A stretch of 64,000 nt of DNA from Mizuhopecten yessoensis (taxonomy: Eukaryota), in contig NW_018408610.1 of assembly GCF_002113885.1 (NCBI RefSeq), forward strand, positions 502,648 to 566,647, in the 5' to 3' direction. The notes below the pieces were generated by a model. It saw nothing but the letters and a program-made list of their open reading frames with translations, ran no database searches and had not been told where the DNA came from. How positions within the stretch are numbered: the stretch's first letter is position 1; each line of letters opens with the position of its first letter. Position numbers and translations under genes: made by a program. Shown one piece after another: positions 17,110-42,896 of the stretch.

Positions 17110-17772
17110 ATTATGACACACTGGCACTTTGTAGGTTTTTTTTTACAAAAATCCAAGGTATCACATGTGTATCAAACTTTTTTCGTGTCTCTACCTATCA
17201 ATAATATATCAAATGATTTTGCAACTGTGCATGTAATCCTGACTTGTCAAGATTATGTTTGGCAGCCAATTTTGTCTTGGTAAAAACAGTGAAATTCAAG
17301 AAAAGCCAAACAACAACAACGGTTTTATAGTCTAGTATGTCCTTCTGTGGAATCCGTATCTCCATCCAATCCTCGGCCAGTAGTAAGCAGTCATAGTCAG
17401 GGTCATACAAACAAACAAACACATACATGATCAATTGTTGCTGCAATTGTTGGAATCAAGAAATGTGATAATGTACTCTCATTCCTGTTAACCTGGGCAA
17501 ATCCATTAGTTATAGCTTCAGCCAAGATTTGCTCCACAACTTTTGATTCCAAAAGAACACTGTCATGTTTCTTGTTGGCTTTTACTTCAATACAAATATC
17601 ATCAGTGTTCTCTATTTCTACCTTTCTTTGTTTTCTTGCAGGTTCAACATCTGTATCTTAACTATCATCATCTTCATCCTCTTCACTGTTCTCAGTTTCT
17701 TCATTTCAAAGTGTCACAGCAATTCGTTGTTCAATATGATATCTACTCCGCCATGCCATGTTTTCTCTGATC
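17110..17772 (-). pseudogene. Paralog A exon 3: PD-(D/E)XK-like nuclease domain, disrupted
   Basis: Acceptor tcaaacag|. Reads SEKTWHGGVDIILN...DDICIEVKANKKHDSVLLESKVVEQILAEAITNGFAQVN...SHFLIPTI...CLYDPDYDCLL...VWLFLNFTVFTK...KSGLH, collinear with 42238-42896. It has frameshifts (~17725; GTTT duplication ~17410) and TGA/TAA stops. Confidence 0.88.
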
Positions 17773-18540
17773 CTGTTTGATAATATAAAAGTACAGTAAA
17801 TAAGCACTTTCGTGCTTTGAAAATGGTTGTCAATTTGAACAGTTCTATAGGAATCTAATTTAAACAAGAGATCCCAGAGGGATCTTGGCGCCCACCATTG
17901 AATTATCTTTATTGGTTCTATGCAAGACTGATCTTTTCTCTACTTTTACATTCTTTCCTCTTCATCATTTGATAACAGGGACAACCTTCTATGAAATAGT
18001 GAAAACTAGAACTGAAAGCCATATAGCTAACTAATAACCCCCACTACCCATCATAAATGACCATGGCAACCAAATGACATCTATTGTTTCGGAAAATAGC
18101 ACTATTTTACTTGCCATCTCTAAAAACCTGTACATACCAATTTTCAGCTTAATCAGACATTATCTCATTTTGGACCAATCAGAAGCCTCCATTATGTGTC
18201 CATAGTAATGGTTCTGGTCTTCAATTAATAAGTTACACCGCTTGACCAAGTTTGAAAACAAGAGGTCCAGAGTCCCTGCATCACTCACCTGGATATTTCA
18301 GTAATCATGGCAAAATACTCTCATTTTGAGTTGCCTCTCCCATAAATGGTTCAAACTAAATGTGCATTGACCAAATCCTATCATTCTTAAAGAAGAAGAA
18401 GAAGAAGGATTTTGAAGTTTTTTGCTCTATTTCCCTTATGGGCCCGGCCCTTCAGGCCCCAAGGGAGCCTATATAGCTAACCCTCACCTTATACAATCTG
18501 ATGATCGTGGACTATATATATAAATTTAAATGGTATCGAA

Positions 18541-19206
18541 CCATCCTTACCTGTGTCTCCTACACAGACTATATCTACTGAAGTGTCTCCTACACAGACT
18601 ATATCTACTGAAGTGTCTCCTACACAGACTATAGCTACTGAAGTGTCTCCTACACAGACTATATCTACTGAAGTGTCTCCTACACAGACTATATCTACTG
18701 AAGTGTCTCCTACACAGATCTTACCTACTAAAGTATCTCCTACACAAATCTTACCTACTGAAGTATCTCCTACACAGATATTACCTACTGAAGTATCTCC
18801 TACACAGATCTTCCCTACTGAAGTATCTCCTACACAGATCTTACCTACTGAAGTATCTCCTACACAAATCTTACCTACTTAAGTATCTCCTACACAAATC
18901 TTACCTACTGAAGTGTCTCCTACACAGATCTTACCTACTGAAGTATCTCCTACACAGACCCTACCTACTGAAGTGTCTCCTACACAGATCTGACCTACCG
19001 AAGTGTCTCCTACACAGATCTTACCTACTGAAGTATCTACTACACAGATCTTACCTACCGAAGTGTCTCCTACACAGATATTACCTACTGAAGTATCTCC
19101 TACCCAGATCTTACCTCCTGAAGTGTCTCCTACTCAGATCTTACCTACTGAAGGTTCTCCTACACAGACCTTACCTACTGAAGGGTCTCCTACACAGATC
19201 TTACCT
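18541..19206. repeat. 30-bp minisatellite, array 1 (about 22 units)
   Basis: Unit gaagtgtctcctacacagatcttacctact. Confidence 0.97.
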
Positions 19207-19919
19207 AGACTGTTTGGAGGTCATGTTCTAGACTGTTTGGATGTCATGTTCTAGGCTGATTGGAGGTCATGTTCTTGTAACATTAGACTGTTTGGAGGTC
19301 ATGTTCTGGTAACATTAGACTGTTTGGAGGTCATGTTCTAGACTGATTGGGGGTCTTTTTCTAGCCTTTTTGGATGTCATGTTCTAGGCTGATTGGAGGT
19401 CATGTTCTTGTAACATTAGACTGTTTGGAGGTCATGTTCTAGACTGATTGGGGGTCTTTTTCTAGCCTTTTTGGATGTCATGTTCTAGGCTGATTGGAGG
19501 TCATGTTCTAGACTGTTTGGATGTCATGTTCTAGGCTGATTGGAGGTCATGTTCTTGTAACATTAGACTGTTTGGAGGTCATGTTCTGGTAACATCAGAC
19601 TGTTTGGGGGTCATGTTCTGGTAGCATTAGACTGATTGGATGTCCTGTTTTGGTAACATTAGACTATTTGTAGGTCGTGTTCTGGTAACATTAGATTGAT
19701 TGGAGGTCATGTTCTTGTAACATTAGACTGTTTGGAGGTCATGTTCTGGTAACATTAGACTGTTTGGAGGTCATGTTCTGGTAACATCAGACTGTTTGGG
19801 GGTCATGTTCTGGTAGCATTAGACTGATTGGATGTCCTGTTTTGGTAACATTAGACTATTTGTTACCAAAACAGGACATCCAATCAGTCTAATGCTACCA
19901 GAACATGACCCCCAAACAG
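19207..19919. repeat. Second block of the 23/32-bp satellite; last ~58 bp inverted
   Basis: Same units as 13855-15812. 19862-19919 is the reverse complement of 19789-19850. Confidence 0.93.
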
Positions 19920-20370
19920 GTAGGTAAGATCTGTGTAGTAGATACTTCAGTAGGTAATATCTGTGTAGGAGATACTTCAGAAGGTAAGATCTGTGTAGGA
20001 AATACTTCAGTAGGTAAGATCTTACCTACTGAAGTGGCTCCTACACAGATCTTACCCACTGAAGTATCTCCTACACAGACCCTCCCTACTGAAGTGTCTC
20101 CTACAAAGATCTTACCTACTGAAGTTTCTCCTACACAGACCCTACCTACTGAAGTATCTCCTACACAGCCCCTACCTACTGAAGTGTCTCCTACACACAT
20201 CTTACCTACTGAAGTATTTCCTACACAGATCTTACCTTCTGAAGTATCTCCTACACAAATCTTACCTACTGAAGTGTCTCCTACACAGATCTTACCTACT
20301 GAAGTTTCTCCTACACAGACCTTACCTACTGAAGTGTCTCCTACACATATCTTACTGACCGAAGTGTTTC
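19920..20370. repeat. 30-bp minisatellite, array 2 (about 3 inverted plus 12 direct units), continuous with exon 2 of paralog A
   Basis: Orientation switches at the palindrome acttcagtaggtaAGATCTtacctactgaagt (centre 20019/20020). Confidence 0.95.
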
Positions 20371-20571
20371 CTTGGCAAATGTTCGCCATACAGTCACAGC
20401 CACATTTGTCTGGAAGTTGCTTTGCATGTTTATCAACCTCGTACTTCTTTCCTTGGATCAACTGGGAAAAGAAATGATGGGCCAATCCAACCATAATTTG
20501 TGTCTCCTTACTTCCATTTGTCGGAGCGTCTTTGGCAAGTTTCTTGATCGCCTCTTCATGTTTTCTTTGCT
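20356..20571 (-). pseudogene. Paralog A exon 2
   Basis: Acceptor ttttttcccag|. EQRKHEEAIKKLAKDAPTNGSKETQIMVGLAHHFFSQLIQGKKYEVDKHAKQLPDKCGCDCMANICQGNTSV aligns to 39577-39795. Donor GTAAGA at 20355. Confidence 0.88.
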
Positions 20572-21723: not shown

Positions 21724-22796
21724 CAGGGCTTTATCAGGGAGTTTCGGGAATCGGTACCCTAGGTTCAAATTTGGAAAAAATGATCGACATTACAGCTACT
21801 TTGGGAAATTTGGACAAACATCATTATAACAACTAATTACATGACTTTCTTGTCTACATTTATTATTATGGCACAGTCAGCTATAATTTTTTTATACTTT
21901 AATTATCGATCGCTCAACAAAGTAATCGGAAGGAATATTTCATTTTGTCAGTGATTGATACTAACTTATTTTATCGGGTGGCCAGCAGGACGACCAGATA
22001 TTGTTTTCAGGTGGTCCTTCTCAATCATAAGTGGTCCTTCCATATTGACCAAGATTAAGAAATAACAATGAAAGTTTTATATATCTTTTGTCGATGTACA
22101 TCTCCATAAAAACGAGGAAATATCTCTGAGTTTTTGCAATGAAATCAGATAGATATTAAAAAGAACATCTAATAACAATGAATTTTACAACAACAAAAAA
22201 TAAAAATGATCATTTATAAACAATAACAAACACAGATTTTTTAAGATTTACAGATGTATTATAAAATAAATCACTAAGTATTTACATTACAAAACTGTTC
22301 TACACATAATATAATTTACATAGCATAGCAAACACATACTTAACTAGACAAAACATAGAACAAAATCAAACAAACAAATTGCATTTAGGGCTGTCTTGGC
22401 TGCTGCATATATATATTACAAAATTACCAGCATGAAGGAAGATAAATTCAAGATTCCCTACCAGGTGCAAGTCCTAATCCTATGAACAGGAAAAGGCGGT
22501 CCTGGTTAAGGGAAATGAGGTAAGTATTAAAGTTTAGAGCTGGTAGACAATGAACAAATGAAGAAATTGAAATTGAATGAGCAGGTTGTGGCCAGGCGAG
22601 GTCCTGAGTCCTCTTGGAGAACCAGGCGAAAGTCCTGTACCACAAAGACTGCTATCATACATAGTTTGGTTACATCGCCAGGCGAGTCCTGAGCCCTACT
22701 GAAGAACCAGGCGGAAAATGGTCCTGTACGATGTAAACTGTGTATGACATGTATATGAAATGAATGAAACCCCAATGACTTTGGGGCTAATGGACC

Positions 22797-23225
22797 NNNN
22801 NNNNNNNNNNNNNNNNNNNNNNNNNNNNNNNNNNNNNNNNNNNNNNNNNNNNNNNNNNNNNNNNNNNNNNNNNNNNNNNNNNNNNNNNNNNNNNNNNNNN
22901 NNNNNNNNNNNNNNNNNNNNNNNNNNNNNNNNNNNNNNNNNNNNNNNNNNNNNNNNNNNNNNNNNNNNNNNNNNNNNNNNNNNNNNNNNNNNNNNNNNNN
23001 NNNNNNNNNNNNNNNNNNNNNNNNNNNNNNNNNNNNNNNNNNNNNNNNNNNNNNNNNNNNNNNNNNNNNNNNNNNNNNNNNNNNNNNNNNNNNNNNNNNN
23101 NNNNNNNNNNNNNNNNNNNNNNNNNNNNNNNNNNNNNNNNNNNNNNNNNNNNNNNNNNNNNNNNNNNNNNNNNNNNNNNNNNNNNNNNNNNNNNNNNNNN
23201 NNNNNNNNNNNNNNNNNNNNNNNNN
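22797..23225. other. Assembly gap (N run) with duplicated flanks
   Basis: About 390 bp left of the gap (22408-22796) recurs almost identically right of it (23226-23613). Confidence 0.95.
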
Positions 23226-24077
23226 ATATATATTACAAAATTACCAGCATGAAGGAAGATAAATTCAAGATTCCCTACCAGGTGCAAGTCCTAATCCTAT
23301 GAACAGGAAAAGGCGGTCCTGGTTAAGGGAAATGAGGTAAGTATTAAAGTTTAGAGCTGGTAGACAATGAACAAATGAAGAAATTGAAATTGAATGAGCA
23401 GGTTGTGGCCAGGCGAGGTCCTGAGTCCTCTTGGAGAACCAGGCGAAAGTCCTGTACCACAAAGACTGCTATCATACATAGTTTGGTTACATCGCCAGGC
23501 GAGTCCTGAGCCCTACTGAAGAACCAGGCGGAAAATGGTCCTGTACGATGTAAACTGTGTATGACATGTATATGAAATGAATGAAACCCCAATGACTTTG
23601 GGGCTATTGGACCGAATTGATTATGCGCAGCATGAGAAAGCCCCAAATTGTATTAAACAAGTTATTCTTTTTTATATAACTGATTAACTAATTATATCAA
23701 ATAATGTTTGTGAATTTTTTTTCAGCTTGATGTAGGTTGTTACTGTGATATAACATTTGTTGAATGGTTAGATTTTGAGTGAAAAATGACTTTCAAGACC
23801 AACATGATGATGAATCTATAAATAGCAAATGGGACCATGCCACCAATACCATATCAAATCAAGAAGTAACTTATTTATAATTCCTTCAAGTGTTATGGGA
23901 GTTTTAAATCAAATAAACGATTGTCATTTCCATGTGTTATGTATACTGTATGCCTTCTAAAACTTGACACAAGCAGTGTGTTCCATTTAGCGGAACGTTC
24001 CGGTTGTGCCAACTTGGAACGGCTCCGCTAAATGGTACAGTACGTTCCAATCACGTTCCCCGCACGCTAGATCCAAC

Positions 24078-27000
24078 ATGGCGGATATCAGCACGATTGC
24101 TACAGCGTCTTATTCTTTTTTATCATTTTTTGATGATGAGGACGACGATATGTTAGAAACCGCAGCTGCTGTGTTTTGTATGACGCGATACCGAGTTCGC
24201 GTTCCGCTGTATGTTGAAAATGTTGTTACAAATTATGATGAAATTGAGTTCCGTTCTCAATTTAGAATGACACGGAGGTCGTTCAATTTATTAACAAACC
24301 TGATTTATGCCACTGATAAAGTTTCTACATATCATGATCAAGGTCGCGAACCTATTCAGCTAGAGAAACAGGTTTTGGTGACAGTTTGGTACCTGGCAAA
24401 CAAGGACTCACATCGGGAAATAGCCGATCGGTTTAATATAACAGTAAGCAGCGTCGCTAGGACGAAATCCCGTGTGATCGACGCTATCATGGCTTTGATG
24501 AAAGAATTCATCGTTTGGCCAACTGGTAATAACCGCACATTGTTCTTTAACAATTAATTACTTCATTTGGGGTTATAACATTTTGTTTAAGGTCCCTTCC
24601 ACTATGGACTTGACAATTTCATAAACATTCGGATAAATTCAGTTTAAAATCTACTTACATTCCAGTATCTTCCCGAATTCATAAGCAAGTTTGAAACTTA
24701 CAAGCCCTTGTGTTCACATAGCCTAGCTAGCAACGTGTAAGATATATACAATGGTGAACGAACGACGATTCTTTAAAATACTATATTCAGTACTTACTTC
24801 ATATGAGACGCATGTAACACTTGCAAACTACATTAAATCGCGTTTAAATCCCAATGACGAATTGCCACAATATTTCTGTCAACTTAAAACATGGCGCCGT
24901 TGAAAGTTCACACGAGCGACAACTCTTGCTGTTAGGTGCATTCGTTTGGCACATAAATACTAAACCTATTCGTTACAAATGTCTGAAATACACATATGCT
25001 TTACTGTGTTAACCTTTGTTACATAAACGTACCGTATTCTTCCTATTTCAATTAATTTCTTTCCTAATAGCATATCCTTCATATATATTTTACGTAAATT
25101 AGTCCACTAAGAATAACATTACCATCGTATATCAAGGAGCAAGACTACAACTGATACAGGAGCAGTTTCAGGCCGTCAATGGGTTCCCAGGAGTTGTTAG
25201 GGCTATAGACGGTACTCACATTCCAATTGCGGCTCCAAGTGACCACAAGTCCTCCTACCTAAACAGGAAAAAATACCATTCCTTGGTGCTCCAAGTAAGA
25301 GAAAAAAGTTTAAAATAATACAATTCCGAAGATTTACTACTTATCATGAGTTTTGACAGCGATAAGTAACATTTTATTTTATAGAAAGTATACAAAAGTA
25401 TAAATATCTACCTATCCGCGTTGTTTGTACCTTGAGGATAACGGATGTGCTCTATGTACTTTTTTAATAAGGCTTGTGCAATAATAAGTGAAATAAAGAC
25501 ACACCTTTTTGTTGAATGTAAATTCAGGCAGTGGCTGATCATTAAATGGGATTCACCGATGTATACGTTGGATGGCCAGGGTCTGTACATGATGCCAGGA
25601 TTTACACCAACAGTAGTGTCTGCCTTAAAGCATCGGAGCTTTTCCCGACACAGAGCCACTTGATTGGAGACGGGGCATATCCTCTTTCGAAGTATGTGTT
25701 TAATTAATGTTTTACACACTACTTGATTTGATAGAGCAGCTCTATTATTTCTTTCTATTTATTACTATTGACAACTAAACTTTTAGTGCCCTGTTAAATT
25801 AATAAGTTTCAATGTTACACTCAAGGGCAGAATGCATGTAAGAAATGCAAACACAGCGGACATTTTTGCTAACGATTACTAATCAATAAAAACATATTTC
25901 CGCCTCATCAAACGTAAGATTTGCCATAATTGCTGTGTGCTGTTCAGGTTTTGGCATTTAAAACATAGAGTGCAATATTCTTTGATTAATACTTGTGTTA
26001 ACGACACCGGATATTGCCTCCAAACAGGCGGTGATCACACGAGATGCAGTTGAAAGTGAGTTTTTCTTCTATATTTTCCTTAATTCAGGGGCTGTCATGT
26101 GCTCGAGGATTTTAGGATCAATACCTCACATTTTCAGCGTTTATATTATCCATAGAAAACGTCCATTAATGGGCCAATATGTCTTCCAGACTTACACACA
26201 CGTCGTGTGGTATCGGCGGAAACTTGCGAGCGATAACCATCACGTGTCTGAATTAATGTATTGTCTACAGCTAAATAAAGATGTATCTACATTACACACA
26301 TTCATTATGTCAGTGAAAGCATTGTATTATATGAAATATCGTCAAAAATATTTCGTCGAACTGTACGGCAACTTGAATGTTTGTTTTTAGATTACTGTAC
26401 GGCATCATGCAAATTGCAAGTCGCCGTACAATGCTATGCAATTATGTCAGCATATTTCTCATAATTTACGAGTTCGAAAATATGATAAATGTATACATTT
26501 TAATTAGTTTTAGGTAATGAAATTTGTTAAAAAACACACACCACTACAATACTAATTCAGACACGTGGTAAGTATCATTCGTGAGTTTTCGCCGATACCA
26601 GGCGGCGTGTTTGCAAGTCTAGAAGAAATATTGACCCATATAGGAACGTTCTCTGTGGTTTAAGCCATTGCTGAAAATGTGAGGAATTGATACAAAAAAG
26701 CCAAAGACCATACAAACCTCTGAAGTAAGGAAATTATAGGAAAAAAATCACCTGCAACAGAAGCCCACTTCGTGTGATCACCGCCTGCTTTGTACCAATA
26801 TCCGGTGTTGTTAACACAGTGATTATATGATGTGTTGTTTTTTGTATATGCGATGCTGCTAATTGTACTTACACCATTTCCCCTGCAAGCATCATACCTG
26901 GCAGGCACTGCCATATCTGTCAAGCATTCTATATCTGCCAACAGTGCGCCATACCCATACTTTCGGCTCAACACATTATAATTCCCCACTTATTTGATAC

Positions 27001-27401
27001 AGGGTGGGTATGGTAAAATTCTTACCTGTCTACTTAAAAATGAAAAAAATATATATTTCAGGACAATGATGACACCATATAGGGACAATGGCCATCTGTC
27101 ACCCAAGCAGCGAAACTACAATAGGAAGCATGCATCGACACGTGTCGTAGTGGAGAGGGCCTTTGGTCTTCTCAAAATAAAATGGCGACGTCTCCATCAT
27201 CTTGAGATGATAAATGTTGATAGCATGTGTAGGGTAATTTGTGCAAGCTGTGTCTTGCACAATTTCGTTTTAGCGGAGGACGGTCCAGATATGCTTCCAG
27301 AACCTGAGGTTGAGGAAGACGGAGATGATGAAACCCAGGCTGACAACATGAACACTACTGGTGTTCATAAGAGAGATTATATAGCTGATTTGCTGTTGTA
27401 A
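24078..27401 (+). pseudogene. Harbinger (HARBI1-like, DDE_Tnp_4-type) transposase, four exons (24078-24525, 25137-25294, 25528-25691, 27062-27401), one premature stop
   Basis: Phase-consistent GT-AG splicing. Motifs FRSQFRMTR, GFPGVVRAIDGTHI, YLNRKKYHSLVLQ, GWPGSVHDARI, LIGDGAYPL, RVVVERAFGLLK, CVLHNF. In-frame TAA at 25543-25545. Confidence 0.92.
25988..26825. mobile_element. Foldback MITE in transposase intron 3
   Basis: Long inverted arms: gtgttaacgacaccggatattg...ggcggtgatcacacgag versus 26768-26818, and 26159-26263 versus 26547-26650. Confidence 0.8.
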
Positions 27402-27452
27402 AAAAAAACTTTAATCACATTCTGGAGAAAGCATTTATTTCATCGATATAAG

Positions 27453-30295
27453 TTACTGTTCATTATTTCCTGGTACCATTCTTGAGAATATGTTTAAGAA
27501 TTTATTCATCACCTCCATTTTCTCCTCATGCTGCTTCTTCTTTTCCTCTCTCATTCCGCTCAAAAGCTCATACATGTTTTCTCTCTTTCTCTTCACTCCC
27601 TTACTTCCATTAGGCTTTTCACTCAAACTGTTACTATTTTCACACACACTATTCTCACCGACACATTCATCATTCATAGAACTGTAGGTGGCCATGGGAG
27701 TAATATTGGGATTACCCCCAATGGCCTCCTCCATTTCCCGTTCATATAAAAACTCTCTTCTTCCACTTCCACTCTTGCCATTCACTCTCTTGACATCCTT
27801 AAACTTTCTCTCAAGCTTTGCCCACTTTCCCTTTAGTTGACTCCAGTCAACGCTGGACTTGCACGTTTCAGAAAACTTATTGGCAATAATTTGCCAGACC
27901 TTTTTTTTGGTCAAGTTTGACCTGTCAAACATGGCTTGGTGGTCCTGCCTTAAGCTAATCAGAAGTCTTGTTGATTCGACTGTCCAGTTGAATTTGTCTG
28001 GGAAAAAAAGATGTTCAATACAAAGACATGTCATACATTACAGTTATATACTATAGCTTTGAGGTGAACCGTATGTTTTTAGAAATATTTTTTTTATCAC
28101 AAAATGACATTTGAATTTGTTCTATATGTAAAGATGTGGTATCTCAGCTTTAAGAAACAAATGTTATTAAAAAAAGTAAATTCGCTAAAAAAGAAGCCCA
28201 AAAGAATATCATTTACATGTCAGAGGCATTAGTAAGAAAAAATAAGTCAAATTATCTCCCTTTGATAAATTTGATATTAATTTGTAAGATGTGTAGATTC
28301 AACTTTTGTTCCATTTGCAAATAAAAGCAAAAGTTTTTAACAATACAGTAATGACATACATATGTGAGCTTGCATAAATTATAACAATATAAATATTTCT
28401 GACAGTCAATATCCATGAGCCAAGAAAACAGTAACGTAAAAATAACTGTAATACGACTGGGCCTGGAGTTAATGTCTGTGTTGGATGTTGTACACACCAA
28501 TGCAACAAAACTAATACACTTTTAAAAATTGGACAGAGCTTTGTATAACAATTTTATTAATTTAAAGGCAATAATCTCCCATTTTGATGGTGTGAAATTT
28601 AAATTTTTGGATAGCGTTTTAGGTAGGTATGAGCGTACTATTGGCAGAGGACAGGCCCCGAGTTTGACCTACATATATCATGTATTTTAGTTTTCATAAC
28701 CTCATATTTTATACAACTGTAAATCTGTATTTGAACTTAAAGGTACCCTTTACCTTAAATGGAGACATTAAAATGTGTTTCAATATATTCATTTAATACC
28801 AATAAACATAATTTTACCATCTGCTTCTGTACTTGCTTCATCTATTCCTAAAATAAAAATATGCTAGTAACATTCACAAATAATACATCAAATCATTTAT
28901 ATTACTATTTGAATAATTATAACAAATTGTGAAGTCATACCAGTGATAATCATGTATTGTCAACCAGTGATAATCATGTTTTGTCATTAATTATATAATT
29001 ATAAGCAGTGGTAGATGTTTAAATCATACAATCAAATTATTGATTAAATGATGTGTTTGAATAGAAATTGAAATCTGAATTGACCCTATTTAAAACAAAA
29101 GTTTTTAAAGAAAATGGTGGATTCCATCTTGGTCAATGTACCAATATTGAAATATAGATGTTCAATCCAGCATACTGTATATATTATATATTATACCATA
29201 TATGAAACTTTACCACTTACCTGTAACTTTATGGAGAGACTGGCTTCCTGTTGCCTCCTTTTCAGCACTGTTTGTGTCTGTGTCACCTTAATTACATAAT
29301 GTAATACTGGTTCATTAAGTTGACATTGATAAGATATTAGTTATATTAATTACTTCATCTTATATGTTTCACTGAGAAAATTACATGTAAAACGAAATAT
29401 AAAAAGTCCTTTTTCAAGCATGAATATATTCAATTCAACTGATATCAAATCAAATAAATATGGCAGGGATCTGGATTAGACTGGGGCCAATTTAGAAAGG
29501 TTATACTGTAATTATAGCATATTGTGAAATCATATAAGTGATAAGTTTCATGTTTTGTCATTAATTATATAATTATAAGCAGTGGTAGATGTTTAAATCA
29601 TACAATCAAATTATTGATTAAATGATGTATTTGAATAGAAATTGAAATCTGAATTGACCCTATTTAAAACAAGAGATTTTAAAGAAAATGGTGGATTCCA
29701 TATTGGTCAATGTACCAAACTACCAATATTGATGTTCAATCTAGCATACTGTATATATTATACCATATATAAAACTTTACCACTTACCTGTAGCTTTATG
29801 GACAGACTGGCTTCCTGTTGCCTCCTTTTCAGCATTGTTTGTGCCTGTGTCACCTTAATTACATACTGGTTCATTAACTTGACATTGATAATATTTCAGT
29901 CAATTATGTATGATATTCACCGTAAGAATATCTAGTATCAATTTGATGAGAAATATGCAGGTTAAATATTTTTGGAATTATTTTAACCTTGTATAAAACT
30001 ATTAAAACATTCATGGTTGACATTTTAAAGCCAAAATCTTCCAGGAGAACATGGAACCTTATAAACCAAACATGTTTTTGTACAGTTGTTTTGCCTGGCA
30101 CTTTTTGAAAATCAGTTCAGAATAGAAATCAGAACTCGAACAACTTAATAATGGACATACACAGATTAAAAATAAAATTTCAATAACGATTGAAAGAATT
30201 ACCTTCCACTTCCAACAGATATGGCCCAACCAGTATGGAGCTCAGGTCTTCTTTATGGGCCAACATTTGATAGGCCATATTTGGTAAGATGGGAT
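27453..30295 (-). CDS. Harbinger Myb/SANT-like (trihelix) DNA-binding protein; exons 30203-30295, 29788-29853, 29221-29286, 28818-28847, 27453-27997; probable first exon from the ATG at 31028
   Basis: Last exon FNWTVESTRLLISLR...KKVWQIIA...QLKGKWAKLERKFK plus a C-terminal coiled coil. Upstream exons are all phase 1-1 with canonical GT-AG. Linkage of the first exon is unresolved. Confidence 0.8.
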
Positions 30296-31597
30296 CTGCA
30301 GGTTCAATTAATTTGGAAACAAATTCATTGAATTATTATAAACCATGTACTATGCAGGGCTGGACAATAAGGGTAGCCTGCTGGCCTACGACTAGTGAAA
30401 CCTCCATCTCGACTACAGTACAGTAGTGGTTATAAAAACTACTAGACCATATAAATATATTGTCTAGTCAAAATTTGATATCAATTAACATGTTGAATAA
30501 TATTTGGTTCATTAATTTACACATGGAGTCATGACTAGTAAAATTGAAATCTACTTGCCAGACTGACTAGTGTTTTTTATTCATACTACACGCAACTATA
30601 TATGTAATTTGTTTCTTCACATGAACATTGATATACACTTTCTGATCAATTTTAGTCATTCATTAATCAAAATAGTCATTTTAACAAGTATTTTTCAGTT
30701 TAAATGTGATGAATATTATGTCGTCAAGCTACCATTTCCATGGGTTTTTTCATTTCATTTTTTTTAAATAAAATTTCAATTGAGTTCATGAGCAAATAAA
30801 AGAGGTAGACTGTTAAAATGTTCCATCTTTGGTAGGCGATTATAACCCCACACTACAAATATCTATATTACACTGATTCAGTCGAAAAAACTGCAAAAAC
30901 AATTAAGATTCTCGCAGTTGAAGTATGTAAATTATATGGAACCGCTGAAATAGTGTTTAACATATTATACATACATATATATCGCATTTGCTTGACATTG
31001 GAATTGGAAATCTTTCATTGACGGCCATATTGGATCCAACTTGGTACCCTCAAATGAAACGTTCTCGACGAACCGGTTCGTTTCGGCGGAACGTCGCGCA
31101 TTCCATTTAACGGAACGGATGGTACGTACCGGAACACCCGGAACGTTCCGCTAAATGGAACACGCTGAAGGATGTCTGTCATTAGCGTAGAAGCCTATGA
31201 AGCAAACTAGGGGAATTTCTGCTTTGTTAAGTCTCGATCACCCAGATAATTGCATTGACAGGGACGCTTAATATCAGTATCTCAAGCGTCTAACTGACTG
31301 AAATCCAAGTCAATCTTCTCAAAATGAATATGAAAGATGTTTTGGTAGCCTCCGGCCTCGGGACCACCGCTAGTTAAGTGTCGATCGCTGTTTGTACATT
31401 ATTTTTTTTAAATATCTGAATTGGGAATTTTAAAGTAGGAAATTGGGAAAAATCACACATATTTTTCATTTGGAATTGGATCCGTTTACCTGACCTAAAG
31501 AGATCGGTGATAAAGCCCTGCCTAGGTACCTTGACCTTTGGTCAGTTGACTCCTTGTTTAATTAGAAAGATAAAGGTAACAAAGGTAGAATAACTTT

Positions 31598-31912
31598 CAT
31601 ACAGAAATTCAAACAACGCCAAGAATGACTGATTAGAGGTAGGGTGTTTCTCAATCGCATCTACTCCATCCTTCAGTAATTCTTTGATAACATCTAAGGC
31701 TAAAATGTCCTTTGTGTAAACACATCCGCACTCTGGGCTGCGCATTAATTCATAGAAAAGTTTAAGACCGCTGAATAATCTTCCCGATTTAGCATTACTA
31801 CATTCAATAACTAAGTTGAGGAATGCAGGCAATATGCCATTATAATCACGGATAATATTCCTGAAAACACTTTGAACTACTTCTTCTTCTTCAGATGTAC
31901 AGAAGCCTTTAG
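31598..31912 (-). pseudogene. Paralog A exon 1
   Basis: EEEEVVQSVFRNII...PAFLNLVIECSNAKSG...PECGCVYTKDILALDVIKELLKDGVDAIEKHPTSNQSFLALFEFL aligns to 34700-35051. No clear ATG, and the donor is degenerate. Confidence 0.8.
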
Positions 31913-31954: not shown

Positions 31955-31975
31955 AGAGCCCGACACAGCCCGGTA
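31955..31975 (-). promoter_or_regulatory. Conserved upstream motif of paralog A (TACCGGGCTGTGTCGGGCTCT)
   Basis: 18/21 match to 34589-34609 upstream of paralog B. Both are followed by TAATTAGTA. Confidence 0.5.
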
Positions 31976-32489: not shown

Positions 32490-33962
32490 TTGTTAGAATT
32501 TTCTTCCGATGATGAATTGGAGAAAATATTACTCGAAATAGGTAAGTGTACCTCCGACACAGGAACGCCCGGTTTCACTGTTAACAATGCCGGAAGGAGA
32601 AACCCAGACCCCAGGGATAACTCATCCCAGGGGGTGTCCTATCCCCCTAGTGTGATGCTGGAAGGAGAAACCCCGACCCAACGGGAAATCAACACTGCTA
32701 CGCAGATGAATAACCCCTCCCAGGGGTGTCCTATCACCCTAGTGACAATACCGGAAGGAAAAACCCTGACCCCACCGGAAATCAACACTGCTACGCAGAT
32801 GAATAACCCTTCCCAGGGGTGTCCTATCCCCCTAGAGACAGTGCCGGAAGGAGAGGTTCCGACTCCAAGTGAAACCAATACCGCTACGCTGATGTATAAC
32901 TCGATCGAGGGGTGCCCTACCCCCTGGAGACAGTGCCAAAAGGAGAAACCCCGACCTCACGGGACAGCAGCGCTAACGTCACACAGGTAAATAAATAAAA
33001 CAATAATAAACACTAAAATTAAAAGTAACCTCGCAAAAAACTTATAAAGTTGCCTTTCTGTCTCGTGAAATTATAGGCGTTAAAAAACCCATTTCAAGTC
33101 GACTTGTGTTTCGAGTTTTAAGTTTTTTAGCATATGTTGAATAAAATTCATACAGAATACATCCACCCCACGGGGTATTCCAGTGCCACCCCCCGACAAA
33201 AAAAATATATATTTCTGTTGAGACACAGAAAATGCTAGAAGGGGCCAACCAATTTGCAATCTGCCTCCACTAAGAGAAATACTATCTGGGGATTACAAAT
33301 ATTCGAAGGTAAATAAATCATGTCAGCTATTAAACAGTTAAATGGATTAAAAGATCAGATTTGGAAATTGTTGAATTTTCGATCCGTGTAATTCGTTCTG
33401 TTATCTAGAACTGGTAAAATGAATCAGTAATTGATATAAAGTAATTATCTAACCATTTAAACCATCACACAAATGACGCTCTTTTTCCAAATCTATAGGC
33501 TAAAAGAGATATTTTTGTTTACATTTAGATTGGAACCAAGAGGTCTTTGGGACAGACTTGGACCTAGAGAGCGTTAGTGAGGAAGACCTCGCAGATGTCC
33601 TCGCCAAATTTTATTATGAGGCGAAGCCTAAAAACACACAAAGCAACGGGCAGAAACATGCCAGCGCACCAGGCCGAGGAATACCATAGAAATACACTTA
33701 TCAATATAAGAGGGGCTGTAAATCGTCATCTAGTAGATAAAGGTCGGAATATTGATACTGTTCGCGGGGTGAATTTCAAAAAAGCGAATCGTACACTAGA
33801 CGGCCTGTTAAAGGGGCGTTAGAGGACTGGGATGGCTCGTCCAACGACACACATGGACATTATATATATCGCCCCAACATTTAACAAAAATATCCACTTA
33901 CCTCCAAGGGGGACTATTCTCCCCTTACATCCTCCGACAGAACTTATGGTACAACGCTGTAT
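32490..33962 (+). mobile_element. Decayed, 3'-truncated Crypton-type tyrosine-recombinase element (N-terminal/core-binding part, KCTD1/ZMYM/QRICH1-like)
   Basis: Spliced ASTKRNTIWGLQIFE|DWNQEVFGTDLDLESVSEEDLADVLAKFYYEAKPK..EEYHRNTLINIRGAVNRHL..FKKANRTLDGLLK..SPYILRQNLWYN (intron 33309-33528). It has frameshifts and a stop, and ends before the catalytic Arg. The upstream ORF has ~105-bp repeats (32615-32950). Confidence 0.78.
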
Positions 33963-34007
33963 CATATACAAATATAACTTTTATGGTTCGAATTTCAAAT
34001 AAATGGA

Positions 34008-34148: not shown

Positions 34149-34588
34149 ACATGCGAAAAGACGTTACAAAAAAATACCTTTACATTTTTTTTTCAAACCG
34201 GTGTTGAAGATGTCGTAACTGTTCTATAAATTGTCTGGACCGCTCGCGATCGGAGCCTTCACCAAAACTTAACTTAAAACCGTTTAATAAATTGATATAC
34301 TACATATATGTTACTAATTTGATACACACAGATGTTACACCATAAACCGCATGGCAAAATATTAGAGCACCCAGAGACGTATATAACACAAATGGCTTTA
34401 TACGTCTCTGGAGCATCTAACAAATTGGTAATTGATATATGACAAGCCAACTTGAACTGGTTTCATGAGATTATGTAAAATATCTTATTCGTGTATAGAA
34501 ATTAAATGAGATATCCTTTATATAAAATTTATAATATGCATCTCATTTACTATATATAAGATGTCTCATTCTAATTTTAAATTTGTAT

Positions 34589-34609
34589 TACCGGGAAGTG
34601 CCGGGCTCT
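34589..34609 (+). promoter_or_regulatory. Conserved upstream motif of paralog B (TACCGGGAAGTGCCGGGCTCT)
   Basis: Matches the motif upstream of paralog A. Further TACCGG copies follow at ~34613 and ~34627. Confidence 0.5.
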
Positions 34610-34639
34610 TGTTACCGGACGGTACATACCGGGCTTTAA

Positions 34640-37600
34640 TTAGTATCACCGTACAGAAGGGCTAAAAAGGCCTCAAGTAGGCCTAGGCCTATTCTCGATG
34701 AATTCAGAGGGTCTAACGAGGAAGCATACTTGAAACGTATTTTTAAATGGCTTTTTACTGAACAGAATCACCCTGGATTTTTAAACTTAGTTATAAAGAA
34801 TAGCAACGCTGCTGAGGGAACGTGTTTCACCGATGCGTCGGTTTATCTGCGAGTAACTGCTGAGCAGCGAATCTATGCACTACGAGAAAACTACTGCGAG
34901 TCTGGCAGGCCAGAGTGTGGATTTCTTCACATGAAGGATATTTTAAATGCACATATTCTTGGGGAATTTTCAGCAGGTGGAGTAGATGCCATCGAGAAAT
35001 ACACCAGTTCTCATCAGCAAGCCTTCTTGGTGTTGATGGAATTCCTACGTGGTAAATTATTAGGATTTTACAGGTTAAGCTGACAGGGTTAAGCTTAACG
35101 TTAATTCTATAACTTGTTTGTACTATGTGTACCCAAAGGGCCAGTGAGCTCACGCCATGGTGCAGCGTCCATCGTCCTTCAACATTTCCTTTAAATCGCA
35201 ACTATAGTCCTGAACGACTGAATAGATTTTGATGAAATTTGGTCTGGAGCATGATTAGGCAAAGAAGATCCAATGTTGTATTAATTTCCATTTTCAATTG
35301 CTAGATGCATTGTCACTATGTAACCTTACCAAACAAAATAGGAAGTTATCATATCATAATTCTCACATATAATTCCTAATGGTATTTAAGGATTGGTATG
35401 ACAACCAATACTTATACATTTTATGTTAAACAACTTACAGTTCACGCAGAAATAAAGACATAATATTAGTCTGAACACATTTTAACGTCAGGGTAAATCC
35501 ATACAGCGAACAGCCACCAGTTGACAGTGGAGCAGTGCAATCTCCAATAGTACAGTTATGACGTCATTAGCATAGCGACGTCACAATGGCCCAATGTATG
35601 TTATACGGAAATAACATACATTGGGCCCAGTAGAAACATCTAGGCTCTGTGCAGTGGAAATGTAAATATAGTGAACAATGTGCGTGACGTCGTCACTAAA
35701 TGACGTCGTTTTGTCTGACGTCATTTTATTAAGTGTATTTTTGACGTCGCGAAAATGCGTGCTACCGGATTAAAAACTTAAATTTAAAACGGAAATATAA
35801 GTATTAAACTGCCTTCCTTGGAAAGTTATTGTCCTATAATACTCACAAGTTAATCATGATGCGCTATTGCACGTTATTAAATTTGTCTGCAATTTTATGA
35901 GAATTATAGGACAATAACTTGCCAAAGAAGACAGTTTAATGCTTAAATAAACGGAGGGTGTGGCTCCCCTGGGGCCGGAGGGTCATGGTGCAGGGCCCAA
36001 TAGGGGAAATAGAGGTAAATCATTTAAATCGCTGCTAGTTTGAACGACTGAATGGATTTTGATGAAATTAGGTCTGTAGCATTATTGGGCAAAGGAGATT
36101 CAATGTTGTATATGAGGAGTGTGGCTCCCCTGAGGCCGGAGTGAGGGGGCCCGATAGGGGAAATATAGCAAAAAACTTTAAAATCCTTCTTCTCTTTAAG
36201 AATGACAGGTTTTAGTCCGCATTTGGTTTGAACAATTGTTGGGAGAGGCAGCTCAAAAGTAGGAAAATATTTGTAATATAACTTATATGAGAGTGTTTTG
36301 CCATGTTTACTGAAATATCCAAGTGAATGATGCAGGCCCTCTGGGCCGCTTGTTAACTCACCTCGTCCGAAGGGCCGATGAGCTTATGCCATGGCACTGC
36401 GTCTGTCGTCCGTCCGTCGTCTGGCATCCGTCAGTCAACTTTTTCTAAAAATTGCTACTCATCATGAACAACTTAGCAGATTTTTACTAAACTTAGTCAG
36501 AAGCATCCTCGGGAGCAAATCTTGTATAAACGGTGGGTGTGGCCCCACCAGGGGCCTGAGAGGCGGGGCCTAATAGGGGAAATATAGCAAATTCTTTAAA
36601 ATCCTTCCTCTTCTGTATGAATCGGTCCATATTTGGTCTGTAGCATTCTTGGGTGAAGGGAAACAAATTTTGTATAAATGGTGGGTCTGGCCCCCCAGGG
36701 GCCTGAGGGGCGGGGCCCAATAGGGGAAATATAGCAAATTCTTTAAAATCCTTCTCCTTAATTCTGTAGGAATGAAAGGTATTGATCCATATTTGATCTT
36801 AAGCATCCTAGGGTAAATTAAAGGGGAACCAATTGTGTATAAACAGTTGGTCTGGCCCCCTAGGGGCTTGAGGGGAGGGGCCCAAAAGGGAAATACAGTC
36901 TGTCCGGCGTCAACTTTTCCATTTAAACAACTTCTCCTCACTAATCAAATCTCCGAGAGTCAGGATATTTGGCTGATTATAGGTTCCTCGGATGAGGCCC
37001 GTCAAAGTTTGCAAAAAGAAATAACCTTGACCCATATTCAAGGCCACAGGGATCGAATTTGTTAAAACCTTTAAACGAATTATTCTCAATAACCAAGAGC
37101 CCTAGAGTCATGATGTTAAGGAAGGTGAGCCAAGAAAGTGTTGTTATTTTACGGCCTCGTAAAAACTTTGACATGGCAGCCATTTTGTGACATGATTACG
37201 CAATCATGGTTTTCCTGTTTTAAACTTTTTCTCAAGTTCCACCAGTGTGATTCAGCAGTTACAAATGATCCTGAGATGGTCCTGACCAAGCGTTCAGGTC
37301 AGTCCAAAATCCAAGATGGCCGCCATGGCAGCCATCTTGAAAAACACATTCAAGTTCTACTGGGCCGATTGAACTGAAACTTAATAGTAATGATCGACTC
37401 ATAGTCCTGACAAAGTGTTGTTATTCTTTAGGTCGATCAGAAATCGAATTTGGCCGCCATTTTGAAAAAACAATTTCAAACTTAAAAACAAGTTCTAATA
37501 GGCCGATTTAACTGAAACTCAGTCAAGGAATGATCGACTCATGGTCCTGACAAACTTAAGTTAACGTTATACTTTACTATTTTATACTCATATTGGTACA

Positions 37601-40600
37601 TATTTCAACAACAAAAATAAATACTGTAGGACTCAGGTGACCATTAAGGCCTATGGGCCTCTTGTTGTATGTCAACATATATTACATTAAAGGCACACAA
37701 GTCTGAGGACCCAAGCTGCGAAAGGTAAGAAAGGTGGCGCTGCAGTTGCCAACTTAATTAGTCTATTTAAGGAATAAACACTGTTTCAATGTGTATTCCA
37801 TGCCAATACATTTATTTACGCTAAAAAAAAAAAAAAGTATCGTGGGTGGCCATGCAACACCTATTTTCAAAAATCTTCTTCTCAAGACCCAGATATGGTA
37901 GAATCAAATATTCTTCATAGATGGAATGTTCTTAAATATAAGGTGCTTTACCAAAATTGTGAATTTCATGACCCTGGGGTCTCACTTTTCCCTCAGAGGA
38001 GGGGGTAAAATTTGCTATAGTTTATATAAGAGAAATTACCTTTTTGAGCATCATTTGTTGAATTGTCATCAGAAATAATCAAAATTTGGTTAGATTTATT
38101 AGTATGGGATGGCAGTTTGATGGTATGCACATATTGGCCCTGACTAACCCCAAGGGGAAGATGAGCCCGGCGAGGCCAAAAGGGGTCAAATTGACTGAAA
38201 TATATTAGAACTCATGATCAGGTGACCGTTAAGGCCCCTCATGGGCATCTTTTATGAATGCAAATTGTTTTGCCATGGGCCTATGTGAACATTTCAGAGA
38301 ATAAACGTGAACTTGTATTAACCATATTCTGTTAATGAGGGGTGGAATTAAAAAGAGTGGAAGCGCACTGGTCCAACACATCGATCATGCAAGTGCTGCA
38401 TGAAGGCCCCTCGATCCGCTAGCAATAGCTATGGCTCAGTTTAGGGTGGTCCGGGGTATTTTCAAATCTAAAAGCTAGCTCTGCACACGGTGCAATCTGG
38501 TACATTTTGTGCTTAAAATAAAACTTTTCAAATCAGCTGAAAGTTAAGATAATTTAACAAAATTATAAGATAACGTCCGATTCCTGTATTTATACAATTG
38601 GGTTAAAAAACCCACTGGTCTACCTGAAAAACTATGGTCTCGGACGATTGGCTAATTCCACCCCTGTAACTAATAAGCTGAGCATTAGTAAGCAGTATTT
38701 GTTTGCATGGTTTGTCTCCCTGGTAACACAATATATTGTTGTTCAACCCATTTTATCCTGAATTCTTCTACAGTACAGTCGTAGTTCCCCATTGCATCCG
38801 TTATAGGACCTGGGTTATAGTTTAAGGTAATAGGATTGTGTCGTTATTTCTCAGTAGAATTTCTTCAAATTTTGTAATTATATTGCTTCGAAGTAAAGAA
38901 AAATTTCTGCCACAAAAAAAATATAGGTTGTCATAATTTTAAGGAATTTAAATTGGAAATTTATGTAAAAAGGGGTGACTTTTGAAAAAAAAATGAAAGA
39001 CACAATTTGTTGCAAAATAATGTCAGTAAAAATGATACTACCATAGATTAGTATTACATTAATGTATATCAATTTGCTAAATGCTGAAATTATGTCAAAT
39101 AAATGATCTTTAAAGGATAAAAAATTGACATTTTATGATAAAACCATATGCACATAGTTATTGTGGGTAAGAGTTATCTTTCTTGAAAAACTTTACAGTA
39201 GTGAAATAGGTAGCGGGTTTCCTGAAGTACAGAAAAATGGATACATGTGGCTCATTGATTAAAAAATACCTGAATTAATGCCTGCATTGCTTTGAAATAC
39301 TTTAATATTGAAAGAAAACACTGTTCTGTCAATAATAAACATACAACATTCATCAGTTTAATATTAAACATTCGAATATGCGGAAATTGTGATATGTACT
39401 GTCTCCCTACATTGGATTTTCAACTAGGGATGTACTTCCTACTTCCATTTATCAATACACTCCTATGACCTTTAAGACTTTTTTGGATACATCTCGTAGA
39501 AAAACAAGTAAAAGGTATCTAAGATATAACATGTATTTGATACAGAAAAATCATTACTTTTTTTTCTGTTTTCTAGAGCAAAAAAAACATGGAAAGGCAC
39601 TTCAAAAAGTTTTTCAAATGACTCCCTCAGCAAATGGAAGTAAAGAGACACAGGTTATGGCTGTGTTGGCTCATCACCTGTTTTCCCAGTTGGTGCCAGG
39701 CAAGAAGTATGAGGTAGATGAATTCGCAAAGCAAGTCCCAAAAGAATGCGGCTGTGGTTGTAAGGCTGATGTTTGTGGAGGAAATACTGCAGTAGGTAAG
39801 ATCAGTTATGTTTTTAGGTCATCTGACCCGAAGGGTCACCGGATGACCTCTAGCAATCCTGTTTTGTCTGCCGTTGTCCGTAAAATTTTCACATTTCAGA
39901 CCTTTCTTAAGGGATTCAGCTCAAACTTCTATGAAATGATCCTAAGATGGTCCTGGCCAAGTGTTGTTATATTTCGGGTCGGTCGAAGATCAAAGATGGC
40001 CGCCATCTTGGAAAAAAAACTATTTTGAACTTCTTCTCAATTTCCACCAGGGGGATTCGGGTCAAACTTGTCTGAAACATTCTTGAAAGTGTTGTTATTA
40101 GTCCCTCACTGGATTTTGATCAAACTTGATCGAGTTTCAGGGTTGTTGGGTCAAGGTAAAGGTCAAGGTCACCATAACTATTTTTTTAGAAAATCCTTGT
40201 CAGCACTCTTGCAGCTTCATTCCTTGAGGGATTTTGATCTGGGACAAATTCGAATTTCAGGGTTGTTCAAGGTCAAGGTCCACGTTACTTTTTAGGTCAT
40301 CTGACCCGAAGGGCTGACCCCGGCATTGTCCACCGTGCGTAAACTTTTCACATTTCAAACTTCTCCTCAAGTTCCACATATATAGGATTTAGCTCAAACT
40401 TACCTGAAATGATCCTGAGATGGTCCTGACCAAGTGTTGTTATTTTTCGGGTCAGTGCGAAATCCAAGATGGCCACCATCTTGAAAAACACATTTTAAAA
40501 TTCTTCTCCAATTTCACTGGTGCCATTGAGTTGGAAATTGGTGAGGATGTTAAGGAAAGGAAGCTGACAGAGTGTTGTTATTTTCTGGCCTGGTTAAAAC

Positions 40601-42896
40601 TTCGACACTGCAGCAAGGCTGCCATTTTGTAACATGATTGCGCAAACATGGTTTTCCTGAACAAAACCTATTTTAAACTTCTTCTCAAGTTCCACCTGTT
40701 GGATTCAGCTCTAACTTTCCTGAAATGGTCCTGACCAACTGTTGTTATTTTTCGGGTCGGTTCGAAATCCAAGATGGTCTACAGTTCAGTCAGATAATGT
40801 GTTATTTTCCTAATTTTTGGCATGGATGTTCTAACAAGGACAATATGGATTTAATTTGGGAAAATAATTCTTATTTTTGTAAATTTTGAACGTGTTTTGA
40901 ACTTATCTTTTCTATGGCAATTCCTCGGTTAAAGTTTTGGTGCAAGTTTCTTCAGTGGTCTACAGTTCAGTCAGATCATGTGGTAGTATTGTCCTTATTT
41001 TGGCATGGATGTTCATATGGGGTCTAATAAGGACAATATGGATTTGATTTGGGAAAATAATTCCTATTTCTGTAAATTTTGGACGTGTTTGGGACTTACC
41101 TTTTCTTGGGCAATTTCTCAGTTAAAGTTTTGGTGCAAGTTTCTTCAGTGATCTACAGTTCAGTCAGATCATGTGGTATTGTCCTAATTTTGTCCATGGA
41201 TGTTCACTAAGTGTGGGGTCTCACAAGGACAATATGGATTTAATTTGGGGAAATGATTTCTATTTTTGGACCACTTTTGGGTCTACTGAAACTGAAACTG
41301 ACAGACAGCATACAAATCGTTGGTGAGATCCGTCCTGGAATACAGCTGTACGATATGGGACCCTTACCTGTACCAACAAAACAACATCCACTCGCTGGAA
41401 AATGTACAACGCCGCGCTGCCCGATTTATAACATCAAACTATAGAAGGGACAGCAGTGTAACAGAAATAATGGGCACTCTAAAACTAACACCACTAAAGG
41501 ATCGCAGGAGAGACCATCGGCTTGCCCTCTTTTATAAGATCGTGAAGGGGCTGGTGGCCATACCTGTAGATCACATATTGGCTCCATCAAACACCCGTAC
41601 CAGATAAAAAAATAGTGAAAATTACCGACATTTCCAGTGTAATACGGACATTTTCATTTTTTCCTCGAACAACAACAGAGTGGAATAATCTACCAGAAGA
41701 CCTCGTCAAAATGCAAGAACTTAAAAGCTTCAAGACAGCACTTCAAACTGAAACAATATAAACTAAAAGCGCACTCCTCCAACCCTGGAATTTATACTCA
41801 AATTTGAGGTCTTCCAGTAATATACAGATACAGATACTGCATGCCCTGATAAAGAGGCATTATGCAGTACATTAGCAAAGAACCAATTACATTAAATGTT
41901 AATAGTATAGTGATGACTATCACTCTTGGTAACAAAAGCATCAGTGCAAGCATTTTAAAACAATCATTGGATAGGGTCAGACGGGTGATTATGCATCCGT
42001 TTGCGGTGCTCGTGTTTTTTTTGTTGCTTGAATATTCAGTTGAGCAATACAGGTGCACTGGGCCTCTTGTATTTCTTAGTTAAAAAAAAGAATATTTATT
42101 GTAAAAAGCAATAATTATCATAATATCAGATATCATAATATGTGATGGTTCCACTGTATAAGAATTGATCCTGGGGTCTGCCCCTTTTATGAATTCAAAT
42201 AAGGGGAATGGTACATTCATATTTATTGTCTCAACAGGGTCACCAGGAACATGGCATGGCAGAGTAGATATTTTGCTGAATCATACAATTGCTGTGACAG
42301 TTTTAAAGAAGCAAATTGTCAGCAAAGAGGAAGAGGAAGAAGACGTGGATGAAAATGAAGGTGAAACTGAATGGAAAAGAAGAAAGGTGGAGAGTTGTGA
42401 TATCTGTGTTGAAGAGAAAGCTGGCAAGAAGCATGACATTGTTCTCTTAGATCAGAAAGTCATTCAACAAATCTTGGCTGAAGCTATAACAAATGGCTTT
42501 GCTCAAGTTAACATGAATAGGGGCTCACTGTCACACTTCCTGATTCCGACGTTTGGAGCCACGCCAGAACATGTTACTATCTGTCTGTATGACCCTGAAA
42601 ATGACTACTTATTGCACATCCAGGAACAGCTTCCGTTATTTTTTCATTCAGGTCTGATCACAGACCAGCTAGATGAGGTTACTGTAATAATCATTTGGCT
42701 TTTCTTGAATTTCACTCTGTTTACTAAAGAAAATATTAGTTCTTTTATAGATCTTGAGAAGTCAGGATTACATAAAGATTTAGAGGAATTTCTGAAGTTT
42801 TACAAAAAGGCAGAAACAAGGATAAATTTTGTTTCACAGACATCTACCGCATCCTGTTTCCAATCTATCCGCACCAAGAAGTGTGTTGCCAAGTAA
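34640..42896 (+). CDS. Paralog B: uncharacterised three-exon gene with a C-terminal PD-(D/E)XK-like nuclease motif set; exons ~34640-35051, 39577-39795, 42238-42896
   Basis: Phase-1 GT-AG junctions give one open frame: ...FLR|EQKKHG...CGCGCKADVCGGNTAV|GSPGTWHGRVDILL...DICVEEK...QILAEAITNGF...FLIPTFG...LYDPENDYLL...*. The same exon structure occurs in paralog A. Start codon not identified. Confidence 0.82.
35110..38250 (+). mobile_element. Cluster of Helentron/HINE-like non-autonomous repeats with internal tandem units
   Basis: Starts such as ttaactcacctcgtccgaagggccgatgagcttatgccatgg followed by cgtc microsatellite; ends caggtgacc.ttaaggccc...gggcctcttgtt; ~150-bp ggggcccaataggggaaatatagcaaa units. 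Confidence 0.7.
38337..38666. mobile_element. Small hAT-like MITE
   Basis: TIR aggggtggaatta / taattccacccct. TSD not convincingly preserved. Confidence 0.55.
39810..42070 (+). mobile_element. HINE-like repeats in intron 2 of paralog B, including three ~185-bp tandem units (40785-41270)
   Basis: ttttaggtcatctgacccgaaggg starts at 39811 and 40290; gtctacagttcagtcagat units; end tacaggtgcactgggcctcttgt. Confidence 0.65.
41295..41840 (+). mobile_element. 5'-truncated CR1/L2-type LINE fragment (RT C-terminus and 3' tail)
   Basis: AYKSLVRSVLEYSCTIWDPY...LENVQRRAARFIT...SVTEIM...RRRDHRLALFYKI, followed by a (cagata)n tail. Confidence 0.85.

Follow-up and report, generated by a model that had tools for sequence, protein, structure and literature searches.

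Type IIL and IIG restriction enzymes carry an N-terminal nuclease domain in which an Asp is followed, at a distance of about ten residues, by an ExK motif and then by a helix. A comparable order of residues, with a His on the first helix ahead of the Asp, is found in the His-plus PD-(D/E)XK endonucleases of influenza virus (PA) and bunyaviruses (L), and small PD-(D/E)XK nucleases of the NucC, Can2 and Hjc type have the same core fold. Among animal proteins the restriction fold is present in mL37 (MRPL37) and mL65 (MRPS30), components of the mitochondrial ribosome that have been called 'repurposed endonucleases' in a review (PMC8998825). The present analysis concerns two paralogous genes, B on the forward and A on the reverse strand, that lie head-to-head in a 64,000-nucleotide stretch (the window) of the genome of the scallop Mizuhopecten yessoensis (contig NW_018408610.1, positions 502,648–566,647). 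As judged from a structural model and an alignment of relatives, this divergent pair on balance probably stems from an old, host-encoded bivalve multigene family whose members would cleave nucleic acid in the nucleus by means of a His-plus PD-(D/E)XK site.

Each of the described systems resembles the bivalve proteins in part. The closest match to the core of the modelled protein (model residues 85–326) is the N-terminal nuclease domain of the type IIL/IIG enzymes, represented by DrdV, BpuSI and MmeI_N, and both contain the succession of Asp, ExK motif and helix. Unlike those enzymes, however, the bivalve proteins lack methyltransferase and target-recognition domains, are encoded by spliced eukaryotic genes, and contain a Cys knuckle as well as a loop of ~45 residues between Asp and ExK; moreover, PF20464 (MmeI_N) has no match in the genome or in the family. 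With mL37 and mL65 they share an animal origin, a similar size (~420–440 amino acids) and the restriction fold, and the structural match spans both the N-terminal part and the core of the bivalve model. Sequence identity, in contrast, is 8–10%, with no Pfam or PDB-sequence match: PF07147 (PDCD9, mL37/mL65) is not among the Pfam matches listed for 148 family members, and the family profile retrieved no mitoribosome chain. In addition, mL37 and mL65 are single-copy, whereas the bivalve family is rapidly duplicating and bears an acidic/basic loop. The resemblance to the His-plus endonucleases lies in the residue pattern only, the Hantaan L endonuclease scoring at background level in the structural comparison (Z 3.6), and that to NucC, Can2 and Hjc lies in the core fold, sequence similarity amounting to a weak PADLOC match of a single member.

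Gene structure and transcription

In tblastn searches with family proteins, three homologous coding blocks were located on each strand of the window, in agreement with the first-pass annotation, which had described head-to-head paralogs with the same three exons 2.7 kb apart. The first exons point away from each other across the interval from 31910 to 34643 (feature coordinates are collected in Table 1). The motif series noticed at that stage is likewise present in both copies (given as B/A), and consists of CGCGCKADVC/CGCDCMANIC, WHGRVDILL/WHGGVDIIL, an acidic loop, ICVEEK/ICIEVK, QILAEAITNGF, FLIPT and LYDPENDYLL/LYDPDYDCLL. At the DNA level, A and B resemble each other in their exons only, as inverted repeats of 194 nucleotides (nt) with 74% similarity and of 172 nt with 76%, and the third exons match each other far above chance (E = 1.6e-28).

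B is open through all three exons, and both of its introns are GT–AG introns of phase 1, the exon 1 donor being a G followed by GT at 35051/35052. Exon 2 encodes a helix with an invariant His (LAHHLF, second His at 39675–39677), the CGCGCKADVC cluster and the sequence GNTAVG. Exon 3 encodes WHGRVD (Asp at 42267–42269) followed by the acidic loop with KRRK; next come ICVEEK (Glu at 42411–13, Lys at 42417–19) and QILAEAITNGFAQ (Gln at 42468–70), and then FLIPTFG, LYDPENDYLL and WLFLNF. B thus retains all residues of the site proposed below (His, Asp, Glu, Lys). It is also transcribed: contigs of 1.0–1.4 kb from four runs of four studies skip exactly 39796–42237 (GT..AG), and in the same contigs 39577 is immediately preceded by the final 30 nt of exon 1. 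Their 5' ends reach only to 34670–34688.

The gene is already annotated, as 'uncharacterized', under LOC110461087, with protein models OWF42426.1 (GenBank, 504 amino acids) and XP_021370048.1 (RefSeq, 534 amino acids). Both models include an extra 5' coding exon that overlaps a 93-nt tandem repeat (3.8 copies, 32617–32964) within the 2.7-kb spacer, and this repeat contributes their N-terminal 110 residues together with the start codon. The extra exon has no counterpart in relatives and is not represented in the transcript contigs seen, whose 5' limits are given above.

Predicted fold

For structure prediction by AlphaFold2, an alignment of 148 sequences that included exon 2 was used, with residues 126–504 of P0008, the GenBank model of B, as the target; the first 125 residues were left out as a doubtful repeat-derived extension. 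The model obtained is a confident one, with a predicted local distance difference test (pLDDT) of 87.4 and a predicted template-modelling score (pTM) of 0.86. When exon 3 was modelled by itself from an alignment with 13 close relatives, the result was too poor to use (pLDDT 41).

An exhaustive VIA-align search with the confident model returned mostly restriction enzymes, Holliday-junction resolvases and related PD-(D/E)XK nucleases among the 50 matches listed. Best of the nucleases is the DrdV nuclease domain (7LO5; Z 8.8, root-mean-square deviation 2.8 Å over 133 residues), followed by BpuSI (3S1S, Z 8.4), NucC (Z 6.1), Hjc (Z 4.1–4.9) and Can2 (Z 4.1–4.7); BbvCI, TT1808, NgoMIV, McrC, SgrAI and lambda exonuclease also appear, each at a lower Z than NucC. 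The top matches come from the human mitoribosome, namely its chains 5 and s (Z 9.1–10.7, 190–210 residues, model 8–322), which we take to be mL37 and mL65, the residue numbering fitting proteins of 423 and 439 amino acids. Beyond the family itself, neighbours in the ESM Atlas belong to PDDEXK_12, MmeI_N and HSDR_N clusters. The prediction therefore supports a PD-(D/E)XK, or restriction-endonuclease-like, core fold for the family protein, as had been proposed from the motifs; the fold predicted is of that kind, so the objection that the protein might adopt some other fold fails.

According to the model, exon 1 would supply an N-terminal alpha/beta-plus-helical part and exons 2 and 3 the PD-(D/E)XK core, with two insertions in the latter. 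The first is the Cys knuckle, which lies between strand 1 and the Asp strand and reads CxCxC..C in scallops and CPxC elsewhere. The second is the disordered acidic loop of ~45 residues immediately ahead of the ExK motif, which would separate the Asp strand from the hEhK segment and the Gln helix. This loop carries a conserved basic patch, EP..K(K/R).K, and its likeness to a nuclear localization signal (NLS) suggests action in the nucleus.

Candidate active-site residues

Residue conservation was evaluated on the 148-sequence alignment in model numbering, with counts taken over the representatives covering each position. In the WHGxxD-I motif, W166 and G168 are kept in 100% and H167 in 92% of these, and D171, which is located between modelled strands 167–169 and 172–174, in 112 of 121 (93%). 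Further along, E219 is found in 92 of 122 representatives (75%), with Asp in 12 more (10%), K221 in 76 of 121 (63%) and Q238 in 82%, while the second His of LAxHLF on helix 1 reaches 94% and the first Cys of the knuckle 98%. Asp, Glu/Asp and Lys occur together in 53 of the 91 sequences covering all three, and Lys alone is lost in another 19. In its usual form the ExK motif reads I/V-E-V-K, the classical strand pattern, for which A has ICIEVK and B ICVEEK. An initial reading of 13 scallop sequences, in which ExK appeared unconserved, is overturned by the larger alignment (E/D 85%, K 63%).

We propose that the helix-1 His, the Asp, the Glu and the Lys would form a His-plus PD-(D/E)XK metal site, and that this site would cleave nucleic acid in the nucleus. 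Since the set of His, Asp, ExK and Gln recalls that of the His-plus PD-(D/E)XK endonucleases, members in which it is kept, B included, may by analogy cut DNA or RNA, and the roughly four in ten members lacking Lys or Glu would bind their substrate and not cut it.

A possible alternative, to which we assign clearly less weight, keeps the same family and fold and has the protein bind nucleic acid or act as a scaffold without catalysis, as mL37 and mL65 do. The Asp, His and Cys residues would then be structural, for instance with two invariant Cys and two His forming a Zn site, and hEhK would be a decaying relic. Much of the evidence that weighs against a cleaving enzyme is also evidence for this alternative. 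Over the whole protein, the structure is matched best by ribosomal proteins that are not catalytic, the very ones that have been termed repurposed endonucleases (PMC8998825). The most conserved positions of the family are W166, G168, P264, Y278, D283 and W314, and not the Glu and Lys of ExK; Lys is gone in 37% of members, a low retention for an enzyme family, and the triad is complete in only 58%. In the model, the partner of the Asp strand is strand 178–182 (IAVTV), which holds no acid-x-Lys, and the ExK segment itself (model 218–221) is of low confidence (pLDDT 47–67) and not modelled as a strand. One paralog (G000:C5551:1280739-1282250), with an exon 3 open for ~500 codons, carries a coding minisatellite inside the core loop, in which ~45 in-frame copies of the seven-residue unit DSCDTCV (a 21-nt unit, corresponding to the 'SCDICV' just ahead of ExK) stand immediately before the motif, so that the segment preceding ExK evidently tolerates very large insertions. 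The catalytic triad put forward in the first-pass annotation is therefore supported only in part, the Asp being well conserved, the Glu and particularly the Lys being retained less often, and ExK lying, in the model, outside the strand paired with the Asp strand.

Other results also count against a nuclease. Foldseek comparison of the model with the PDB and with viral models found nothing significant, and the Z values of 8–10 given by VIA-align are only moderately over the background stated for that method; of the check by AlphaFold and Foldseek envisaged at the outset, the first half thus gave a confident model and the second half gave no support, the fold being shown by VIA-align and the Atlas. 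No consistent match among the 148 members was obtained with Pfam, NCBIfam or PADLOC. Within the first 25 of the 96 Pfam families matched, only Nse4_C and Upf2 match more than one member, and the PADLOC matches are confined to single members (Cas4 at E 1.5e-4 in one of 148, NucC at 0.029). The family profile found no PDB sequence at E ≤ 10. With regard to B itself, no in-frame ATG stands ahead of 'MKDIL' (~34931), and 'KAS' is read where relatives start 'MAS', so that the usual start codon of the family is missing.

On the other side, the retention of Asp (93%), of the helix-1 His (94%) and of Gln (82%) exceeds the needs of hydrophobic-core residues, the I/V-E-V-K pattern is still found in a majority of members, and neither Pfam nor PDB sequence searches reveal similarity to mL37 or mL65. 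Cleavage by a His-plus site is, on balance, the reading we favour for those members that keep the full set of residues.

A family expanded in bivalves

An exhaustive profile search assigned to the family 527 representatives (clusters at 50% identity) at E ≤ 1e-3, of which 216 remain at E ≤ 1e-10, and full-length members measure 400–440 amino acids. Among the best 150 of the 527, all named members are from bivalves (Mizuhopecten, Pecten, Argopecten, Ylistrum, Pinctada, Mytilus species and Mercenaria) and all are called 'uncharacterized'. In the ESM Atlas, proteins of the family's shape form two mollusc clusters, one of 167 and one of 458 members. Literature searches, whether by the identifiers of gene and protein or on the topic of restriction-like folds in bivalves, turned up no paper on the family, and no usable match came from a language-model search with the N-terminal 150 residues. 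With no Pfam, NCBIfam or PDB-sequence match and no source name other than 'uncharacterized', the family is as uncharacterized as the first-pass annotation had supposed.

In the M. yessoensis genome (988 Mb in 82,659 contigs) at least 40 matches to exon 3 were found, about half of them with stops and many locally clustered. Intact paralogs differ by 0.6–1.1 synonymous substitutions per site (dS), with a ratio of non-synonymous to synonymous rates (dN/dS) of 0.32–0.48. Local clusters, disrupted copies and these distances fit the birth-and-death evolution suggested for the pair, with an open, transcribed and spliced B and a dead A. Immune and stress genes are known to have expanded greatly, and in a lineage-specific manner, among bivalves.

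Such a number of copies could also result from mobility, if the nuclease gene belonged to a transposon or virus or had been domesticated from one in recent times. Copies and fragments are numerous and dispersed over the genome, the window is rich in transposons (a Harbinger element in an intron of A, a Tc1/mariner element at 10040–10729), and some mobile elements encode PD-(D/E)XK nucleases. We nevertheless regard this origin as improbable. No near-identical copies of the gene were found in the genome, the closest paralog being just 64–67% identical in protein, at the dS values given above. The similarity of A and B does not extend beyond their exons. The three-exon structure and the phase-1 intron positions are common to mussel and clam genes, the Mytilus gene having introns at both family positions (between FLR and E/D, and directly after NTSxG) and the Mercenaria gene at the second only. 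Family genes are neither fused to nor regularly accompanied by a transposase or viral domain, and the viral structure library yielded nothing significant. These features mark the family as one of long standing among the host's own genes, shaped by duplication and loss of copies and not by recent mobility, and the mobile character that had been considered for the pair is not upheld.

Still less probable, to the point of being very doubtful, is a secreted or injected toxin-type effector in which the restriction fold would act as a Crinkler- or RHS-like killing domain, as had also been entertained. The fold and the lineage-specific expansion would suit such a role, and nothing further speaks for it. 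In B and its 148 relatives, however, there is no Crinkler or RHS header nor any other Pfam domain, the N-termini of relatives such as P0009 are polar by eye, with no hydrophobic signal-like stretch, and the internal acidic loop has a basic patch of nuclear type. A host-encoded, probably nuclear nuclease remains the preferred interpretation of the family.

Copy A and the surrounding sequence

Copy A is a pseudogene, as follows from its frameshifts, stops and lost splice donor. Its exon 1 has no ATG and is preceded by an in-frame TGA just upstream, and AA is read at the position of the exon 1 GT donor of B. The remnant of exon 3 still encodes WHGGVDIIL, ICIEVK, QILAEAITNGF, FLIPT and LYDPDYDCLL. 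A minisatellite downstream of exon 2 derives from amplification of that exon's donor region, and its 30-nt unit combines the exon end with the 5' splice site (GTAGGTAAGATC); the counterpart of this unit in B is GCAGTAG followed directly by GTAAGATC, at 39790–39805. The minisatellite yields long false open reading frames (ORFs), for example SPTQILPTEV repeats.

The assembly gap in A touches no exon, and no reading frame of A or B passes through it. Its flanks of 388 nt each, 22409–22796 on the left and 23226–23613 on the right, are identical at 387 of 388 positions. For this reason the gap marks either overlapping contig ends that were left unmerged or a junction within a tandem duplicate; an overlap is probable, so that the gap may be absent from the real chromosome. 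The Harbinger remnant in the same intron shows HTH_Tnp_4 and DDE_Tnp_4 pieces on the forward strand and a Myb/SANT-like ORF (Myb_DNA-bind_4) on the reverse strand.

Table 1. Coordinates of the features of the two paralogs and their introns, numbered along the window.
Feature	Position	Strand	Remarks
B exon 1, N-terminal domain	34640..35051	+	open from 34640; RefSeq acceptor ~34657
B exon 2	39577..39795	+	acceptor AG 39575-76, donor GT 39796-97
B exon 3	42238..42896	+	stop at 42894-96
Extra 5' coding exon in GenBank/RefSeq models of B	32655..32987	+	source of their start codon
A exon 1 remnant	31593..31910	-	open; internal deletion relative to B
A exon 2	20356..20571	-	open; AG acceptor and GT donor retained
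A exon 3 remnant	about 17144-17773	-	at least 2 frameshifts, at least 4 in-frame stops
Assembly gap, 429 N	22797..23225		in intron 1 of A
Decayed PIF/Harbinger transposon	24006..28034		inserted in intron 1 of A; outside the gene family
30-nt minisatellite blocks, both orientations	18553..20372 (18553-19207, 19920-20372)		in intron 2 of A

Elsewhere in the window, the Tc1/mariner-type transposase remnant mentioned above is recognized by DDE_3 and HTH_Tnp_Tc3_2. The long open frames 93–2123 (676 amino acids) and 59308–61152 (614 amino acids) are without any Pfam match; around the former, G+C is 51% and GC skew is strong (0.475), so that it is probably repeat-derived and not a gene. In the spacer between the paralogs, ORF 33577–33822 (81 amino acids) has no significant Pfam match and shows, by eye, a likeness to the core-binding region found N-terminally in tyrosine-recombinase (Crypton-like) proteins.

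Implications

This is an unnamed family inside a well-known superfamily, with an unusual pattern of insertions and a striking expansion in bivalves. Most likely its members are nucleic-acid-handling proteins built on a restriction-type core and stabilized by a Cys/His metal site. A more ambitious proposal, which we consider speculative and rather unlikely, is that they form a bivalve-wide, expanded group of nuclear Zn-knuckle His-plus PD-(D/E)XK nucleases serving genome defence against viruses or transposons, or programmed DNA or RNA processing; given the likeness to mL37 and mL65 over the whole protein, they would then be a free-living, still catalytic relative of the endonuclease repurposed by animals for the mitoribosome.

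Several hundred sequence clusters here have neither a name nor a Pfam model, yet share a confidently predicted nuclease-scaffold fold. Should members be active, they would make up a new family of animal nucleases, unusual in that the catalytic hairpin contains both a Cys knuckle and a long loop that is acidic and NLS-like, and would be candidates for defence against viruses or transposons in molluscs of commercial importance. Should they be inactive, the family would be a second case, after mL37 and mL65, of animals reusing the restriction fold as a binding module. Either way a profile model is warranted, and would label hundreds of bivalve genes that are now 'uncharacterized'.

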